Part shown: positions 1 through 64,000 of the stretch, one piece after another
Position numbering within the stretch: position 1 is the first letter of the stretch
How the letters are laid out: each line of letters starts with the position of its first letter
NCBI GenBank assembly: GCA_028826165.1
Contig: JAPDFW010000122.1
Span: forward strand, 101,248 to 165,247
Length of the DNA stretch: 64,000 nucleotides
Direction of reading: 5' to 3'
Source: Anaeramoeba ignava BMAN
Lineage: Eukaryota > Protista > Anaeramoebae
Translations under genes and position numbers: made by a program
The notes under the pieces: generated by a model
Database searches by the model: none
The model's input: the letters and a program-made list of their open reading frames with translations, nothing else
What the model was told of the DNA's origin: nothing

Positions 1-2115
1 TTTTAAATCAATTTTAAATTAATTTTAAATCAATTTTAAATCAATTTTATATCAATTTTATATCAATTTTATATCAATTTTATATCAATTTTAAATAAAT
101 TTTATATCAATTTTAAATCAATTTTATATCAATTTTATATCAATTTTATATCAATTTTAAATCAATTTTTAAATTAATTTTATATCAATTTTATATCAAT
201 TTTAAATCAATTTTATATCAATTTTATATCAATTTTATATCAATTTTATATCAAATTTTATATCAATTTTATATCAATTTTATATCAATTTTAAATCAAT
301 TTTTTATATCAATTTTAAATCAATTTTAAATTAATTTTTATATCAATTTTATATCAATTTTAAATTAATTTTAAATCAATTTTATATCAATTTTAAATCA
401 ATTTTATATCAATTTTAAATCAATTTTATATTAATTTTATATCAATTTTAAATCAAATTTAAATCAATTTTAAATTAATTTTAAATCAATTTTAAATTAA
501 TTTTATATCAATTTTAAATTAATTTTATATCAATTTTAAATTAATTTTATATCAATTTTAAATCAATTTTATATCAATTTTTAAATCAATTTTATATTAA
601 TTTTAAATCAATTTTATATTAATTTTAAATCAATTTTAAATCAATTTTATATTAATTTTAAATCAATTTTTTATATTAATTTTAAATCAATTTTAAATCA
701 ATTTTATATTAATTTTAAATCAATTTTATATTAATTTTATATCAATTTTATATCAATTTTATATCAATTTTAAATCAATTTTAAATCAATTTTAAATTAA
801 TTTTTAAATCAATTTTAAATTAATTTTAAATCAATTTTATATCAATTTTAAATCAATTTTAAATCAATTTTATATTAATTTTATATCAATTTTATATCAA
901 TTTTAAATTAATTTTAAATCAATTTTAAATTAATTTTAAATCAATTTTAAATCAATTTTATATCAATTTTATATTAATTTTTATATCAATTTTATATTAA
1001 TTTTAAATTAATTTTAAATCAATTTTAAATCAATTTTATATTAATTTTATATTAATTTTTTATATCAATTTTAAATCAATTTTAAATCAATTTTTTATTT
1101 TAAATCAATTTTATATCAATTTTTATATCAATTTTATATCAATTTTATATCAATTTTAAATCAATTTTATATCAATTTTTATATCAATTTTAAATCAATT
1201 TTAAATCAATTTTATAAATCAATTTTAAATCAATTTTAAATCAATTTTAAATCAATTTTAAATCAATTTTATATTAATTTTATATCAATTTTATATCAAT
1301 TTTATATCAATTTTATATCAATTTTATATCAATTTTATATCAATTTTAAATTAATTTTAAATCAATTTTATATTAATTTTAAATCAATTTTATATTAATT
1401 TTAAATCAATTTTATATCAATTTTATATCAATTTTATATTAATTTTAAATCAATTTTAAATCAATTTTAAATCAATTTTATATCAATTTTAAATCAATTT
1501 TTATATCAATTTTAAATCAATTTTATATCAATTTTATATTAATTTTAAATCAATTTTATATCAATTTTAAATCAATTTTATATCAATTTTATATTAATTT
1601 TAAATCAATTTTATATCAATTTTAAATCAATTTTATATCAATTTTAAATCAATTTTAAATCAATTTTATATCAATTTTAAATTAATTTTAAATCAATTTT
1701 AAATCAATTTTATATCAATTTTAAATTAATTTTAAATCAATTTTATATTAATTTTAAATCAAAACTAAAATAATTTTAAATCAATTTTAAATCAATTTTA
1801 AATCAATTTTAAATCAATTTTATATCAATTTTATATCAATTTTATATCAATTTTATATCAATTTTAAATCAATTTTAAATCAATTTTAAATCAATTTTAT
1901 ATCAATTTTAAATCAATTTTATATCAATTTTATATCAATTTTAAATCAATTTTAAATCAATTTTAAATCAATTTTATATCAATTTTAAATCAATTTTAAA
2001 TTAATTTTAAATTAATTTTAAATCAATTTTAAATCAATTTTAAATCAATTTTATATCAATTTTAAATCAATTTTAAATCAATTTTATATCAATTTTATAT
2101 CAATTTTATATCAAA
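1..2115. repeat. 11-bp tandem satellite (TCAATTTTAWA)n
   Basis: Directly visible tandem units tcaattttaaa/tcaattttata over about 2.1 kb. Confidence 0.95.
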
Positions 2116-2276
2116 ATCTAAATAATTTAATTAAAAAAAATGAGTCAAAATTAAATAAAATTCATAATAAAATTAAATTTTTTTTTAATTTTTTTTTTTC
2201 ATTTTTTTATTTCATTTTTCTTTTTTAATTTTTTAATTTTTAATTTGTGGTTTTTTTTTTATATTTTTTTTGGAAA

Positions 2277-4353
2277 ATGTTTGAAGATAATCCGTTAAAG
2301 ATTGTTCTTGTTGGAGGAGGTTCAGGTTTGTTAATTTAAAAACTTAAAAAAATTTAAAAAAATTTAAATTAAAAAAATTTTTTTTTTTTTCGAATTTTGT
2401 TTTCTCATAAATTATTGCTTTTTTTTTTTCTTTCTTTCTTTTATTATTTTAAATATAATCAGTTGGAAAATCTTGTTTAGCAACTCAATTCCTTCAAGGA
2501 AAATTTATTGAAGATTATGATCCTACAATCGGTAATTAATATTTTACTTACTTTCTTTTTTTCTTACAAAAAAAAAAAAACAAATTGAAAATTTCAAAAA
2601 AAAAACCCTAAAAAAAAAAGCAAAAAAAAAATTTAAATTTACAAACTTTTTGAATTATATTTATAATTTTATTTATAATTAAATTTATAATTAAATCCTT
2701 TTTTTTTTAATTTGTCTTAATTATCAAAAAAAGAAAAAAAAGAAAAAAAAGAAAAAAATTTTTTTTTAATTTCAATCAATTAAATTAAATTAAATATTTA
2801 TTTAAATAATTAATTAATTAATTATTTATTTATTTAGTTGCAAGCCATCAAAAAGTTATGGAAATTGAATCTGAACAAATACATGTTGAAATTATTGATA
2901 CAGCAGGTCAAGAAGAATACAGATCAGCAAGAGATAAAGTAAACTAATCCAACTTTATTTATCCTTTTTTTTTCTAAATTAAAAATTCAAAATGAAAAAC
3001 AATTTTTAAAGCAAAATTTTTAAAGCAGTTTTCAAAGAACAAATCAAAACAATTTAAAACAATTTAAAATGAAATTTAAAATGAAATTATAATTAAATTT
3101 ATCAACAAATTAATAATTAAATTTATCAATAAATTAATAAATAAATTTATCAACAAATTAATAATTAAATTTATCAACAAATTAATAAATAAATTAATAA
3201 ATAAATTAATAAATAAATTAATAAATAAATTTATCAACAAATTAAATAAATTAATAAATAAATTTATAATTAAATTTATCAACAAATTAATAAATAAATT
3301 TATCAACAAATTAATAAATAAATTTATCAACAAATTAATAAATAAATTTATCAATAAATTTATCAATAAATTAATAAATAAATTAATAAATAAATTAATA
3401 ATTAAATTAATAAATAAATTAATAATTAAATTAATAATTAAATTAATAATTAAATTAATAAATAAATTAATAATTAAATTAATAATTAAATTAATAATTA
3501 AATTAATAATTAAATTTAAAATTAAAATTAATAAATTCAAAACAAAATTTATAATGAAATTTAAAATGAAATTTAAAATGAAATTTATAATTATATTTAA
3601 AATGAAATTTATAATTAAATTTATAATGAAATTTAAAATGAAATTTATAATGAAATTTATATCAAAATTTAAAATGAAATTTAAAATGAAATTTATAATT
3701 ATATTTATAATGAAATTTATATTTATATTTATATTTAAATTTATATTTTTTAGTATATAAAATTAGGAGAAGGATTTATTTTAGTTTTTAGTATTATTGC
3801 TCGTCAAAGTTTTGTTGAAGCACAACTTCTTCATGAATCAATTCGTCGAGCTAATAATTTTAATAAAGCACCAGTTATAACTGTTGCCAATAAAATGGGT
3901 TATTTTTTTAATTAATATTCTTTTAAATGAAATTTATTTATTTATTTAATTTTATTTAAAATAGATTTAGAAAATGAAAGAATTGTTTCAAAAGAAGAAG
4001 GAGAAGAATTAGCAAATAAATATTCCAGTCAATATTATGAAACGTAAATAATTTTAATAATTTAATTTAAAAAAAAAATTTTTTAATTTAAAAATAAATA
4101 AATTTTAAAAATTGGATAAAAAATTTTAGATCAGCAAAAACTGGAAAAAACGTCGATTTATGTTTTGAAACTATTACAAAATTATTGAAAGAAGCAAGAT
4201 TAAATAAAGCACAACAACCAGTTACAACTCAATCTTCAAATTCTAAATCATGCTGTTTAATTTTATGGTAAAAAACAAAAACAAAAATAATTTTTAATTT
4301 TTTAATTTTTTAATTTTTTAATTTTTTAATTTTTAATTTTTTAATTTTTTAGA
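2277..4353 (+). CDS. Ras-family small GTPase, 7 exons (2277-2325, 2463-2531, 2838-2938, 3754-3898, 3965-4043, 4130-4267, 4353)
   Basis: Manual GT-AG splicing with consistent phases gives KIVLVGGGSVGKS, YDPTI, DTAGQEEY, NKMD, ETSAK and C-terminal SCCLIL. Absent from the ORF track because the exons are short. Confidence 0.9.
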
Positions 4354-15846: not shown

Positions 15847-18800
15847 ATGTCACAATCAGATTTTAATCCACACACAGCTCTTGGTTCACATCGATGGCAA
15901 GCTTTCCTTTTATCTTTATTATTCTTATTTTTTGGTTTAATTTCTTTATCAATACTTTTTTATCAATTCATTACAAGGTATTTTTAAAAAGATTCCGAAT
16001 AAAAAGAAGAAAAAGAAAAAAAATTTTTTTTCTCTTTGATTTAATAAGATTATATTATAAATAAATTTATAAATAATTTTACAAATAATTTTACAAATAA
16101 TTTTACAAATAATTTTACAAATAATTTTATAAATAATTTTATAAATAATTTTATAAATAATTTTATAAATAATTTTATAAATAATTTTATAAATAATTTT
16201 ACAAATAATTTTATAAATAATTTTATAAATAATTTTATAAATAATTTTATAAATAATTTTATAAATAATTTTATAAATAATTTTATAAATAATTTTATAT
16301 AATTTTATAAATAATTTTATAAATAAATTTAATTTAATTTTAAATAATTTTATAAATAATTTTATAAATAATTTTATAAAATAATTTTATAAATAATTTT
16401 ATAAATAATTTTATAAATAATTTTTATAAATAATTTTATAAATAATTTTATAAATAATTTTATAAATAATTTTATAAATAATTTTATAAATAATTTTATA
16501 AATAATTTTACAAATAATTTTATAAATAATTTTATAAATAATTTTATAAATAATTTTATAAATAATTTTATAAATAATTTTATAAATAATTTTATAAATA
16601 ATTTTATAAATAATTTTATAAATAATTTTATAAATAATTTTATAAATAATTTTATAAATAATTTTTATATTTAATTTTATAATTAATTTTATAATTAATA
16701 TTTATTTAAAATAATAATTTTATAATTAATTATTTATAAATAATTTTATAAATAATTTTATAAATAATTTTATAAATAATTTTATAAATAATTTTATAAA
16801 TAATTTTATTAATAATTTTATAAATAATTTTATAAATAATTTTATAAATAATTTTATAAATAAATTTTATAAATAATTTTATAAATAATTTTATAAATAA
16901 TTTTATAAATAATTTTATAAATAATTTTATAAATATTTTATGTTAATTTTATAAATAATTTTATAAATAATTTTATAAATAATTTTATAAATAATTTTAT
17001 AAATAATTTTATAAATAATTTTATATTTAATTTAATAAATAATTTTATATTTAATTTTATAAAATAATTTTATATTTAATTTTACAAATAATTTTATAAA
17101 TAATTTTTAAAATAATTTTATAAAATAATTTTATAAATAATTTTATAAATAATTTTATAAATAATTTTATAAATAATTTTTATAAATAATTTTTATAATT
17201 AATTTTTATAAATAATTTTATAAAATAATTTGTATAAATAATTTTATAAATAATTTTATATTTAATTTAAGATTATATTATAAATAAATTTATAAATAAT
17301 TTTATAAATAATTTTATAAATAATTTTATAAATAATTTTATAAATAATTTTATAATTAATTTTATAATTAATTTTATAATTAATTTTATATATAATTTTA
17401 TAAATAATTTTATAAATAATTTTATTTTATAAATAATTTTATAAATAATTTTATAAATAATTTAATAAATAATTTTATAAATAATTTAATAAATAATTTA
17501 ATAATTTTATAATTAATTTTATAAATAATTTTTATAAATAATTTTATAAATAATTTTTATAAATAATTTTATAAATAATTTTATAAATAATTTTATAAAT
17601 AATTTTATATATATAATTTTATAAATAATTTTATAAATAATTTTATATTTAATTTTATAAATAATTTTATAAATAATTTTATAATTAATTTAATAAATAA
17701 TTTTATAAATAATTTTATAAATAAATAAATAATAATTTTATAAATAATTTTATAATTAATTTTATAAATAATTTTATAAATAATTTTATAAATAATTTTA
17801 TAATTAATTTTATAAATAATTTTTAAATAATTTTATAAATAATTTTATAAATAATTTTATAAATAATTTTATAAATAATTTTATATAAATAATTTTATAA
17901 ATAATTTTATAAATAATTTTATAAAATAATTTTATAAATAATTTTATAAATAATTTTTATAAATAATTTTATAAAAATAATTTTTTATAAATAATTTTAT
18001 AAAAATAATTTTATAAATAATTTTATAAATTTTTATAAATAATTTTATAAATAATTTTATAAATAATTTTATAAATAATTTTATATTTAATTTTATAAAT
18101 AATTTTATAAAATAATTTTATAAAATAATTTTATAAATAATTTTATAAATAATTTTATAAATAATTTTATAAATAATTTTATAAATAATTTTATAAATAA
18201 TTTTATAAAATAATTTTATAAATAATTTTATAAATAATTTTATAAATAATTTAATAATTTTATAAATAATTTTATAAATAATTTTATAAATAATTTATAT
18301 TTAATTTAATAAATAATTTTATAAATAATTTTATAATTAATTTTAATAAATAATTTTATAAATAATTTTATAAATAATTTTATAAAATAATTTTATAAAT
18401 AATTTTATAAATAATTTTATAAATAATTTTATAAATAATTTTATAAATAATTTAATAAATAATTTTATAAATAATTTAATAAATAATTTTATAAATAATT
18501 TTTATTTAATTTAATAAATAATTTTATAAATAATTTTTATATAATTTTATAATTAATTTTTAATTTAATAAATAATTTTATAATTTTATAAAATAATTTT
18601 ATAAATAATTTTATAAATAATTTTATAAATAATTTAATAAATAATTTTTGTAAATAATATTATAAATAATTTAATAAATAATTTTATAAATAATTTTATA
18701 AATAATTTTTATAAATAATTTTATAAATAATTTTTATAATTAATTTTATAAATAATTTTATAAATAATTTAATAAATAATTTTATAAATAATTTTATAAA

Positions 18801-61137: not shown

Positions 61138-64000
61138 ATGGCAGAAAATAACCCAATAGTAATAGTTTTTATTGGAGGAGAACAATCTTCAAAGCATGAT
61201 TTTCTTGATTTTGAAAGAAGACAACAAATTCTTGGAAAACTTTCACCTTCAAATTTTTCACCTTTTGAAATAACAATCACAACTAAAGACAAAACAAGAA
61301 CAATAAGAATAATTGATGCCCCAACAAAAGAAACTGAAAAGCAAGAAAGAGACGAATTATTAGCGCAAACTGATATTATTGTTGTTTGTTTTTCACTAGT
61401 TTCTCAATCAAGTTATGATGAAGTTGAAAATGTTTTAATAAAAGAAGTTAATAATTTGGAAAAGAAAGTACCTACTTTTTTACTTGGAATTGGGACTGAT
61501 TTGAGAAATAGTGAAGATGTATTAAGCAAACTTTCTTCAAATCCCATTTCAGAAGAACAAGGAAAAGAACTTGCAAAAAAAATATCTGCAAAATCTTATT
61601 TTGAATGTGAATTATTTGGAAGAAATCAATTACAAATAATTAAGGATTTTATTGAAATTTTGGATGAAGAATTAAAAGAAGAAAATTTAAAAGAAGAAAA
61701 TTTAAAAGAAGAAAATTTAAAAGAAAATAATTTAAAAGAAGAAAATTTAAAAGAAAATAATTCAGAAGATAATTCAGAAGATGAAAAATTAGAGGAACAA
61801 AAACCTTTATCTATTAGTATTGAATCGCAAATTTATAACAACGAATTGATAATTGGAGAAAGTGCAAATAACCTCCCATATTTTAATGATTTAATTGAAT
61901 CAGAATTAAAAGCAAAAGAATCAATAAGACCAATTTCCGAAACAAAAAAATATAAAGTTATTGAAAAGAATATTATGCTTATTTCTGAAAGTATCGATTT
62001 TGCAATTGATTTTGCTGATACTTTCTTATTGATTTCTGATTCTCAAACTTATCTTCAACAAGATACAAACGATTTAAAAAATTTCTCAATTTCAATTCAA
62101 ATTTCAAATTCAACTTTAAATATCCATTTATTTTGTGTAGATTTAAATCAAGAAATTGAAAAAGATGAAAATCTTAAAAACATTGATACGTTTATGATTT
62201 TTTTTAATTCGGAGACAAAGGATCAACATTCAAAAATATTAAATTTCTGGAGAACAATTTTACTTCCTCTTCCAAATGAATATTTAATGGCAGTAATTAA
62301 TATCGATCCAAATGGTCAATCTTATAATGATAAAAAAGAACTTTTTTCTCAAAATTTGAAATTGGCTAAATTTGCAGCAGAAATAAAATCTTCTCATTTT
62401 TTCCAGATTAATTCTTGTACAAATGTAAATGATGTTGCAAAAGTTATGATTGAAATTTTAGCTGCTCAATTCCAAAATCTTTCAACCTTAAAATCAGAAT
62501 TACATCAAATTGTATTTAATGAGGAAATTAAGGATATGCAAAGAAAAAAAGAAGAACTTTTAGAGTTATCTTTAGTAAATTGAAAACAAATTTAATTGAA
62601 ACAATTTAATTCAAAAACAATTTAATTCAAAACAATTTTAATTCGAAAACAAATTTAATTCAAAACAAATTTAATTCAAAAACAATTTTAATTTAATTCA
62701 AAACAAATTTAATTCAAACAAATTTAATTCAAAACAAATTTAATTCAAAACAAATTTAATTCAAAACAAATTTAATTCAAAAACAATTTAATTCAAAATT
62801 TAATTCAAAACAAATTTAATTCAAAACAAATTTAATTCAAAACAAATTTTAATTCAAAACAAATTTAATTCAAAACAATTTAATTCAAAACAAATTTAAT
62901 TCAAAACAAATTTAATTCAAAAACAAATTTAATTCAAAACAAATTTAATTCAAAACAAATTTAATTCAAAACAATTTTAATTCAAAACAAATTTAATTCA
63001 AAAACAAATTTAATTTAATTCAAAACAATTTTAATTCAAAACAAATTTAATTCAAAACAAATTTAATTCTAAAACAAATTTTAATTCAAAACAAATTTAA
63101 TTCAAAACAATTTTAATTCAAAACAAAATTAATTCAAAACAAATTTAATTAAATTAATTCGAAAAAACTTAGGGAAAAAATGAATTGCATACAAAAATTT
63201 TACAAATTTGTAATACAGAAGATTTATTATCAACATTAAACAAAACAAAAAATCCAGATATAAGAATGGTATTCTTTAATTATTAAATATAATTTAATAT
63301 AATTTATTTAAATTCTTTATAATTTAGAAAGTAAGAAAAATATTTACTTAATTAATTAATATTTTTATTTATATATATTGATTATTTATGATTAGAATGT
63401 AAATTTTATAAAAAAGTTTTAATTTAAATTTGAATTTAATTTGATTCAAAATATTTTCCTTCTTTTTTTTTAAAAAAAATAAGAAAATGACTGGTTTGCA
63501 TCTTGCTTGTTTACATAATTCTCAAATTGATGTTATTAGAATTTTAGTAATTTCTGGAGCAGATGTTAATGCATTAGATGTAAAATAACAAAAATAATTA
63601 AGAAAATTTTAAAATTTTATTAAAATTATCTTAATTATTTATTTAGAGAGTAAATTTAATAAAATTTTTGATTTTTCAAATTAATTTATTTTGATAAACA
63701 AAATTAATTTTAAAAGAGAGTAAAAATAATGAAATTTTTCATTTCGAAATTTTATTATTTATTAAAATAATTATTTTTATAAATTTTTCTTTTTTTAAAA
63801 AATGAAATTATAAAAGAACAAAACACCTCTTCATTACGCTTGTGAAAATCAAGTTAGTTTTGAAATTATTCAATATTTACTTGATAAAGGATCTGATCCA
63901 AATTTAAAATCAGTAAATTAAAATTAAAATTAAAATTAAAATTATAACTAAAATCAAAAATTAAAATTAAATAGAATGTAAATTTTTTTGGATTTGGAAT
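61138..64000 (+). CDS. Degenerate Rho-like GTPase domain(s) + ankyrin repeats, 3' end beyond the window
   Basis: TDIIVVCFSLVSQSSY..VPTFLLGIGTDLR..ISEEQGKELAKKI..YFEC. Donor at 62575. Ankyrin exons 63173-63268, 63484-63579, 63817-63912 (TGLHLAC..GADVNALD, TPLHYAC..GSDPNLK). Confidence 0.8.
62590..63150. repeat. 16-bp intronic satellite (AAAACAAATTTAATTC)n
   Basis: Directly visible. Confidence 0.9.
63328..63977 (+). other. Five 3-nt microexons: 63328-30 AAA, 63396-98 AAT, 63647-49 AGA, 63717-19 AGA, 63975-77 AAT
   Basis: Each reads WAG-NNN-GTAA, is flanked by 59-97-nt introns, and restores the ankyrin loop spacing. Confidence 0.8.

Follow-up and report, generated by a model that had tools for sequence, protein, structure and literature searches.

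The 64,000-nucleotide (nt) window analysed here is the end of contig C123 in the assembly of Anaeramoeba ignava BMAN (42,843,398 bp, 147 contigs), and it closes on a gene for a Rho-GTPase/ankyrin protein in which the ankyrin exons are separated by isolated AG-NNN-GT islands. We propose that these islands are genuine exons of exactly 3 nt, each supplying a single codon to the ankyrin domain and for the most part included constitutively, a reading that we hold with good confidence from its fit to the sequence of this gene and its relatives. The pattern in the DNA is very likely real: the islands are specific to one length and one strand, lie at intron-sized intervals, contain no stop codons, and restore the repeat period that ankyrin proteins otherwise have in this genome. 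The large ankyrin and ankyrin-BTB family of A. ignava probably shares the layout, with a few thousand such exons. Unless a contig is named, coordinates refer to the window.

Islands between ankyrin exons in a Rho-GTPase gene

The ankyrin exons form the C-terminal part of the GTPase gene upstream. The open frame at 61138–62574 is 100% identical to residues 1–479 of the GenBank protein model P0001, "rho family gtpase [Anaeramoeba ignava]", residues 45–158 of which match the Pfam Ras family (PF00071). P0001 also matches the ankyrin profiles Ank (PF00023; 50.1 bits, cut-off 21.1) and Ank_2 (PF12796; 48.1 bits), and a further GenBank model, P0002, matches Ank with 82.1 bits. The original prediction had placed three phase-0 ankyrin exons of 96 nt in this gene, with two islands between each pair of exons, a fifth island after the last exon, and intervening introns of 59, 65, 85, 67, 67, 97 and 62 nt. 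The exon coordinates proved exact, each exon being open and flanked by AG and GT, the islands were confirmed to the base, and every one of the intron lengths is correct (Table 1). All of these 59–97-nt introns begin with GT and end with AG, and their G+C content is 6–11%.

An assembly break divides the gene: the start of contig C45, which carries the last two ankyrin exons, overlaps the final 620 nt of the window at 98% identity. On C45, exon 3 is followed by AAT and TTT islands, a fourth 96-nt exon, ATT and AAA islands, and a final exon that ends in TAA, so that the gene has eight islands in total over the two contigs, exactly two in each of its four gaps. P0001 accordingly has a false end: it is truncated at the contig break, and its final two residues are read from the intron after exon 3. 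Apart from overhangs at the ends of the alignment, from which 63770–63818 was left out, the differences between the C123 and C45 copies are confined to introns, which fits the islands being exons but is weak evidence on its own.

Restriction to a 3-nt spacing and to the gene strand

Within the window, the motif AGNNNGTAA has 21 matches against 10.9 expected, five of them in the final 700 nt. A sharper distinction emerges for isolated islands with AT-rich flanks on both sides, of which the ankyrin gene has 4 in 149 eligible positions and the rest of the window none in approximately 29,400 comparably AT-rich positions on both strands. The proposal had been considered open to refutation if AG-NNN-GTAA were equally common in non-ankyrin introns, and in the comparably AT-rich DNA of the window such islands are not.

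A search of the genome with the Pfam Ank profile returned 7,824 candidates, some of them long arrays without introns and the others single repeats in short open frames. We sampled 17 loci of the latter type together with the continuation of the present gene on C45, giving 18 loci, and a profile derived from these same loci served to locate their ankyrin exons. Exons of exactly 96 nt account for 91 of the 111 ankyrin exons in this sample. When the gaps between ankyrin exons were scanned for AG-NNN-GT, as the original prediction had suggested, islands were present in 79 of the 86 gaps, one in 46 gaps, two in 30 and three in 3. Counting AG-N{k}-GT on the gene strand of these 86 gaps (19.3 kb) for k from 0 to 12 gave 5, 9, 4, 115, 5, 4, 4, 9, 2, 6, 3, 5 and 5 matches, respectively, and the antisense strand at k = 3 gave a single match. 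All of the sampled islands are 3 nt long and keep the frame.

The excess at a spacing of three is also evident across the genome for the strict form TTTAG-N{k}-GTAAA, with 216, 728, 101, 157 and 168 matches for k = 2 to 6. Spacings 2, 4, 5 and 6 served as the control here instead of the backwards pattern, which is dominated by coding ATG...GAT words. As the strict form makes up about 15% of the sampled islands, its excess extrapolates to roughly 3,900 islands in the genome. Inspection of 20 unclustered strict matches placed about half in a G+C-richer, probably exonic context that represents background, while ankyrin exons adjoin six and a further two are flanked by the final ankyrin repeat on one side and a BTB exon on the other. 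At C1:1181183-1181895 and C6:9856-10568 a single island separates the final ankyrin repeat from the first BTB exon, and the layout is therefore not confined to junctions between repeats.

Evidence for the islands as probable exons

Stop codons make up 8.9% of intronic triplets but are absent from the 115 islands (P = 2e-5), among which ATA, TAA and TTA are nearly missing. The islands also divide the gaps into pieces of intron size. The 194 resulting sub-introns of the 18 loci have a median length of 72 nt (interquartile range 65–83) and a minimum of 53 nt, most falling between 53 and 110 nt, and in all 46 single-island gaps at least 54 nt are left on both sides of the island (P ~1e-20 under uniform placement). 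For comparison, annotated A. ignava introns have a mode of 76 nt (PMC11550330, Table S3A), with the shortest at 35 nt and a mean of 300 nt, and are approximately 92% A+T (8% G+C; PMC11550330) in a genome of approximately 81% A+T. The sole exception to the 53-nt minimum is one 9-nt spacing that arose by local duplication: at C92:137501-144000, minus strand, the gap at 2195–2492 contains two identical aatag-AAA-gtaaaa islands, tandem duplicates 9 nt apart of which no more than one is usable.

Splice signals at the islands are stronger than those of the exons between which they lie. Donors of the form GTAA follow 86% of islands against 58% of 96-nt exons, and acceptors ending in TAG precede 70% of islands against 47% of 96-nt exons.

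The protein sequence offers a separate measure, namely the spacing of the TPLH-type motif from one repeat to the next. In 18 intronless ankyrin frames of the same genome this spacing is 33 residues in 56 instances, 34 in 27, at least 35 in 27 and 32 in only one. In the split genes, leaving the islands out gives a period of 31–32 residues in 39 of 42 gaps, and adding them gives 33–34 in 38 of 42; the ankyrin period of approximately 33 residues is thus reached with the islands and missed without them. In agreement with the earlier claim that omitting the islands leaves each loop two residues short, a two-residue gap opened exactly at the junction of exons 2 and 3, in all four alignments obtained, when the ankyrin part of the GenBank model was aligned by BLASTP with an ankyrin protein unrelated to it. 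The fit of exon 3 to the 33-position Pfam Ank model, which extends from position 2 to 31 and no further, points the same way.

Two classes of split gene can be distinguished by where the 96-nt exon ends. In class 1, to which the present gene belongs, the exon ends three residues past the conserved Asn and two islands follow, and in class 2 it ends four residues past this Asn and is followed by one island, 96 + 3 = 99 nt being the length of one canonical repeat. Five paralogs with a protein identity of 48% in their exons have identical island counts (1, 1, 2, 1), and their island residues are N/K/N/N/N, N/S/N/N/K, K-N four times, and Y/V/Y/F/F. A comparison of the residues encoded by islands and by exons among these paralogs, also suggested in the original prediction, gave identities of 46% and 48%, respectively, indicating that the two are about equally conserved, and since the layout is kept among paralogs only 48% identical, it must be old. 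Alignments between introns of different loci score no higher than those of shuffled sequence.

An extreme form of the layout occurs at C2:6001-11000, minus strand, where, at ~1446–3839, the islands between three ankyrin exons come in runs of ten at intervals of 54–91 nt and read K-T-G-W-D-S-G-F-Y-D and K-D-K-D-S-Y-N-R-T-E. The codons in these runs are not AT-biased (TGG, GGT, GAT and TCT are among them) although their surroundings are 90% A+T, and the runs appear to spell whole extended hairpin loops, one codon per exon.

Considered together, the specificity of length and strand, the lack of stop codons, the intron-sized spacing, the strong splice sites, the repeat period and the conservation among paralogs all support the central claim of the original prediction that single-codon exons fill the two hairpin residues of D-x-x-G-x-T. 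On this basis we regard inclusion of the islands in the mature mRNA as likely, and inclusion that is constitutive as the most likely form, in which case the public models would be two residues short in each repeat of this gene.

Observations that weigh against inclusion

Several observations count against reading the islands as exons. Firstly, in the GenBank models P0001 and P0002 each 96-nt exon is spliced straight to the next and the islands are skipped, which is what the original prediction had anticipated of gene predictors. As the sole annotation these models constitute weak counter-evidence. The published A. ignava annotation used HISAT2 mapping, and we take it that a mapper of this type cannot place 3-nt exons and would provide intron hints for the direct join; because the models were possibly built on such hints, they are not independent evidence against inclusion. 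Secondly, searches among homologous proteins for any derived from transcripts returned only the island-less GenBank models and one RCC1-BTB protein of A. flamelloides. Thirdly, 7 of the 86 gaps have no island, and the island count departs by one, up or down, from what the canonical spacing requires in roughly 5 of the first 25 gaps. Finally, spacings of 6 and 9 nt are at background level even though they too would preserve the frame, and no tested explanation accounts for the restriction to 3 nt.

A retrocopy of a split gene would preserve the spliced mRNA sequence, but no processed, intronless retrocopy closer than 44% identity was found. A search for orthologues with P0001 was swamped by generic ankyrin proteins, the top clusters belonging to molluscs, an insect, A. 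ignava itself and metagenomes. At the one A. flamelloides locus considered, a two-exon RCC1-BTB gene, spacing 3 is not enriched, a result that says nothing on the ankyrin genes of that species. The Anaeramoeba genome papers mention neither microexons nor ankyrin, the preprint on A. pumila (10.64898/2026.04.11.717937), a species with only 22 introns, does not mention microexons, and full-text literature searches returned no comparable case, either of single-codon exons recurring at one position throughout a gene family or of runs of such exons.

Alternative explanations

The original prediction went beyond constitutive exons and suggested that skipping or shuffling of the islands might diversify the protein, possibly as a receptor system. 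According to this explanation the islands are alternative, frame-neutral cassettes, and by skipping and combining them the gene would vary its ankyrin binding surface, making the family a splice-based generator of diversity. The layout would permit this, as all pieces are in phase 0 and every subset stays in frame, and the residues concerned occupy hairpin-tip positions that are reportedly randomised in designed ankyrin binders (DARPins). The runs of ten islands, moreover, encode long loops that differ between repeats, and the number of ankyrin candidates points to a very large family. We nonetheless consider the explanation unlikely. The islands in a gap equal the missing residues in number (two and two in the present gene) and restore a repeat of 33–34 residues, leaving no surplus of cassettes over positions from which alternatives could be drawn. 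The constitutive 96-nt exons have weaker splice sites than the islands, whose number and residues alike have been conserved in old paralogs to about the degree seen for exon residues. The receptor suggestion also fails to find support, because Pfam matches identify the hosts as GTPase/ankyrin and ankyrin-BTB-BTB proteins and include no receptor-like domain, signal peptides and membrane segments being outside the scope of that comparison. It is accordingly doubtful that the hairpin loops of ankyrin and ankyrin-BTB proteins are varied by the choice of codons at splicing, as a natural, splice-combinatorial counterpart of a DARPin library; if they were, Cul3-type ubiquitin ligases might use the varied loops to select substrates, or the loops might act in interactions with bacterial symbionts and prey.

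A different possibility is that the islands are absent from the mRNA altogether, the whole gap of 140–240 nt being removed and the islands acting as intronic decoy or stepping-stone splice sites. This would agree with the direct joins in P0001 and P0002, and recursive splicing through internal sites is known from animals. A stepping-stone, however, needs an AG followed at once by a GT, and this spacing of 0 was counted 5 times in the sampled gaps against 115 times for spacing 3; splicing at an AG-NNN-GT island would keep NNN in the mRNA. Gaps of 140–240 nt are also not long relative to the mean intron of this genome. Intronic signals would further leave unexplained the absence of stop codons, the TGG and GGT codons in the runs, the restored repeat period and the two-residue gap at the exon junction, and we judge the possibility to be quite improbable.

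Chance matches, low-complexity sequence or an assembly artefact might be suspected in a genome so rich in A+T, where short motifs recur and AT-rich stretches match weakly genome-wide, but this suspicion is refuted by the counts by spacing and strand, the stop-codon and sub-intron statistics and the empty background of the window, and with C123 and C45 in agreement and the layout seen in more than 18 loci its probability is negligible.

Proposed mechanism and evolutionary origin

If the islands are exons, as we favour, each 96-nt phase-0 exon would carry both helices of a repeat, and the one or two 3-nt exons that follow would give the residue or residues at the hairpin tip, which in the present gene correspond to positions 2–3 of D-x-x-G-x-T. 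The pieces would be separated by ordinary introns of approximately 55–100 nt, each recognised singly by intron definition, which would explain why an exon below the size that can be "defined" could be spliced in nonetheless. Exon length would then matter little except for crowding, as an acceptor and the next donor are only 3 nt apart. We posit that neighbouring introns are removed sequentially, the first splice fusing the codon to an exon of normal size and so easing the crowding, and that the unusually strong GTAA donors and TAG acceptors would aid these steps.

With regard to origin, tandem duplication of an intron together with one adjoining codon could produce an exon of exactly 3 nt and a loop one residue longer, and a duplication unit of this composition would account for the lack of 6- and 9-nt exons. 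Flanking introns were compared for signs of a young, introner-like family and neighbouring introns within runs for tandem duplication, and the alignment scores were barely above those of shuffled controls; given this lack of residual similarity, any duplications would be old. Identical neighbouring codons (AGA/AGA here, GAT/GAT and TTT/TTT elsewhere) occur in 6 of 36 pairs counted by hand, against approximately 10% expected, which is not clearly above chance.

Comparison with known gene architectures

In human ANK1, exons of 99 nt encode one ankyrin repeat each. The A. ignava genes resemble this arrangement in having one phase-0 exon per repeat, 96 + 3 nt adding up to the same canonical 33 residues, and differ from it in that the last or first codon or codons of the repeat are cut off by extra introns. 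Work by Binz and colleagues in 2003 is said to have identified the two residues after the conserved Asp of D-x-x-G-x-T as target-contacting hairpin tips, which were randomised in DARPin libraries. The putative microexons of the present gene encode exactly these positions, a likeness of position only.

In splicing terms the islands have much in common with the 1–15-nt microexons of animals and plants, being internal, below the size for exon definition, bounded by canonical AG and GT, frame-preserving, equipped with strong sites and missed by predictors. On the gene strand they have AG and GT in place, flanking introns of spliceable size, and a frame that is kept without a stop. Plant microexons are widely misannotated (PMC8831610), and exons of 3 nt are known, among them a conserved exon of MAP4K5 (PMC8632122) and a 3-bp exon of RPS24 (PMC12686416). 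Such 3-nt exons in animals and plants are isolated and few per genome, unlike those proposed for A. ignava, which are family-wide, tied to one position of the repeat, present once or twice per repeat or in runs of up to ten, and estimated at a few thousand.

The micro-exon genes (MEGs) of Schistosoma, which PMC4015677 mentions and which were reported by DeMarco and colleagues in 2010, are said to contain many tandem, symmetric and frame-neutral microexons whose skipping makes protein variants. The A. ignava genes share with them the tandem, frame-neutral arrangement. The microexons of MEGs, however, are 6–36 nt long and account for the bulk of the coding sequence in genes for small secreted proteins, in contrast to islands of exactly 3 nt that contribute one or two residues to a repeat of 33–34, and the 96-nt exons of A. 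ignava carry approximately 94–97% of each repeat. Recursive (ratchet-point) splicing is similar in that sites internal to a single annotated intron allow stepwise removal, but ratchet points consist of a juxtaposed AG and GT, a zero-length exon of which nothing is left, a spacing not enriched here, and the A. ignava islands would leave 3 nt in the mRNA.

Features at the contig end and composition of the window

The features of the gene are collected in Table 1. The intron between the GTPase exon and ankyrin exon 1 is nearly filled by a satellite (62578–63150) with a period of 16 nt, 35.2 copies and the unit AATTCAAAACAAATTT. Elsewhere in the window, positions 1–2000 contain no G at all and have a G+C content of 7%, with a 12-nt satellite of unit about TTTTATATCAAT at 1–360, and the G+C content of positions 16001–18000 is 0.9%. 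Among features not connected with splicing, numerous inteins, some of them in Msh-family proteins, have been published for Anaeramoeba (PMC10710043).

Table 1. Exons, introns and candidate single-codon exons of the Rho-GTPase/ankyrin gene at the end of contig C123 (window coordinates)
Feature	Position	Strand	Remarks
First coding exon, 479 codons, Ras/Rho-family GTPase domain and uncharacterised region	61138–62574	+	GTAAAT donor at end
Intron, 598 nt, nearly all 16-nt satellite	62575–63172	+	GTAAAT...TTAG ends; GenBank model splices across
Ankyrin exon 1, 96 nt, phase 0, degenerate capping repeat	63173–63268	+	in P0001
Intron, 59 nt	63269–63327	+	GTATTC...TTTAG, G+C 7%
Putative single-codon microexon AAA (Lys)	63328–63330	+	AG-AAA-GTAAG island isolated in AT-rich DNA
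Intron, 65 nt	63331–63395	+	GT...AG
Putative single-codon microexon AAT (Asn)	63396–63398	+	AG-NNN-GT island; found on C45 too
Intron, 85 nt	63399–63483	+	GT...AG
Ankyrin exon 2, 96 nt	63484–63579	+	ankyrin-exon profile 56.5 bits
Intron, 67 nt	63580–63646	+	GT...AG
Putative single-codon microexon AGA (Arg)	63647–63649	+	same on C45 despite differing surrounding intron
Intron, 67 nt	63650–63716	+	GT...AG
Putative single-codon microexon AGA (Arg)	63717–63719	+	AG-NNN-GT island
Intron, 97 nt	63720–63816	+	GT...AG
Ankyrin exon 3, 96 nt	63817–63912	+	profile 61.4 bits; Pfam Ank positions 2–31 of 33
Intron, 62 nt	63913–63974	+	GT...AG
Putative single-codon microexon AAT (Asn)	63975–63977	+	AG-NNN-GT island
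Start of next intron, cut by end of contig C123	63978–64000	+	gene resumes at C45:1-1120

Significance

Should RNA confirm the proposed exons, no set of 3-nt exons known so far would come close in size to that of A. ignava, with its runs of ten. This set would provide a natural test bed for how a spliceosome deals with exons that cannot be defined: in what order the introns are removed, where steric limits lie and what the very strong GTAA and TAG sites contribute in DNA of 92% A+T. Hundreds of A. ignava ankyrin models would then lack one or two residues per repeat, or entire ten-residue loops, and the genome would have several thousand introns more than the 32,108 annotated. The layout also presents an evolutionary puzzle, in that every codon boundary of the loop would have an intron and the adjoining 96 nt would have none.

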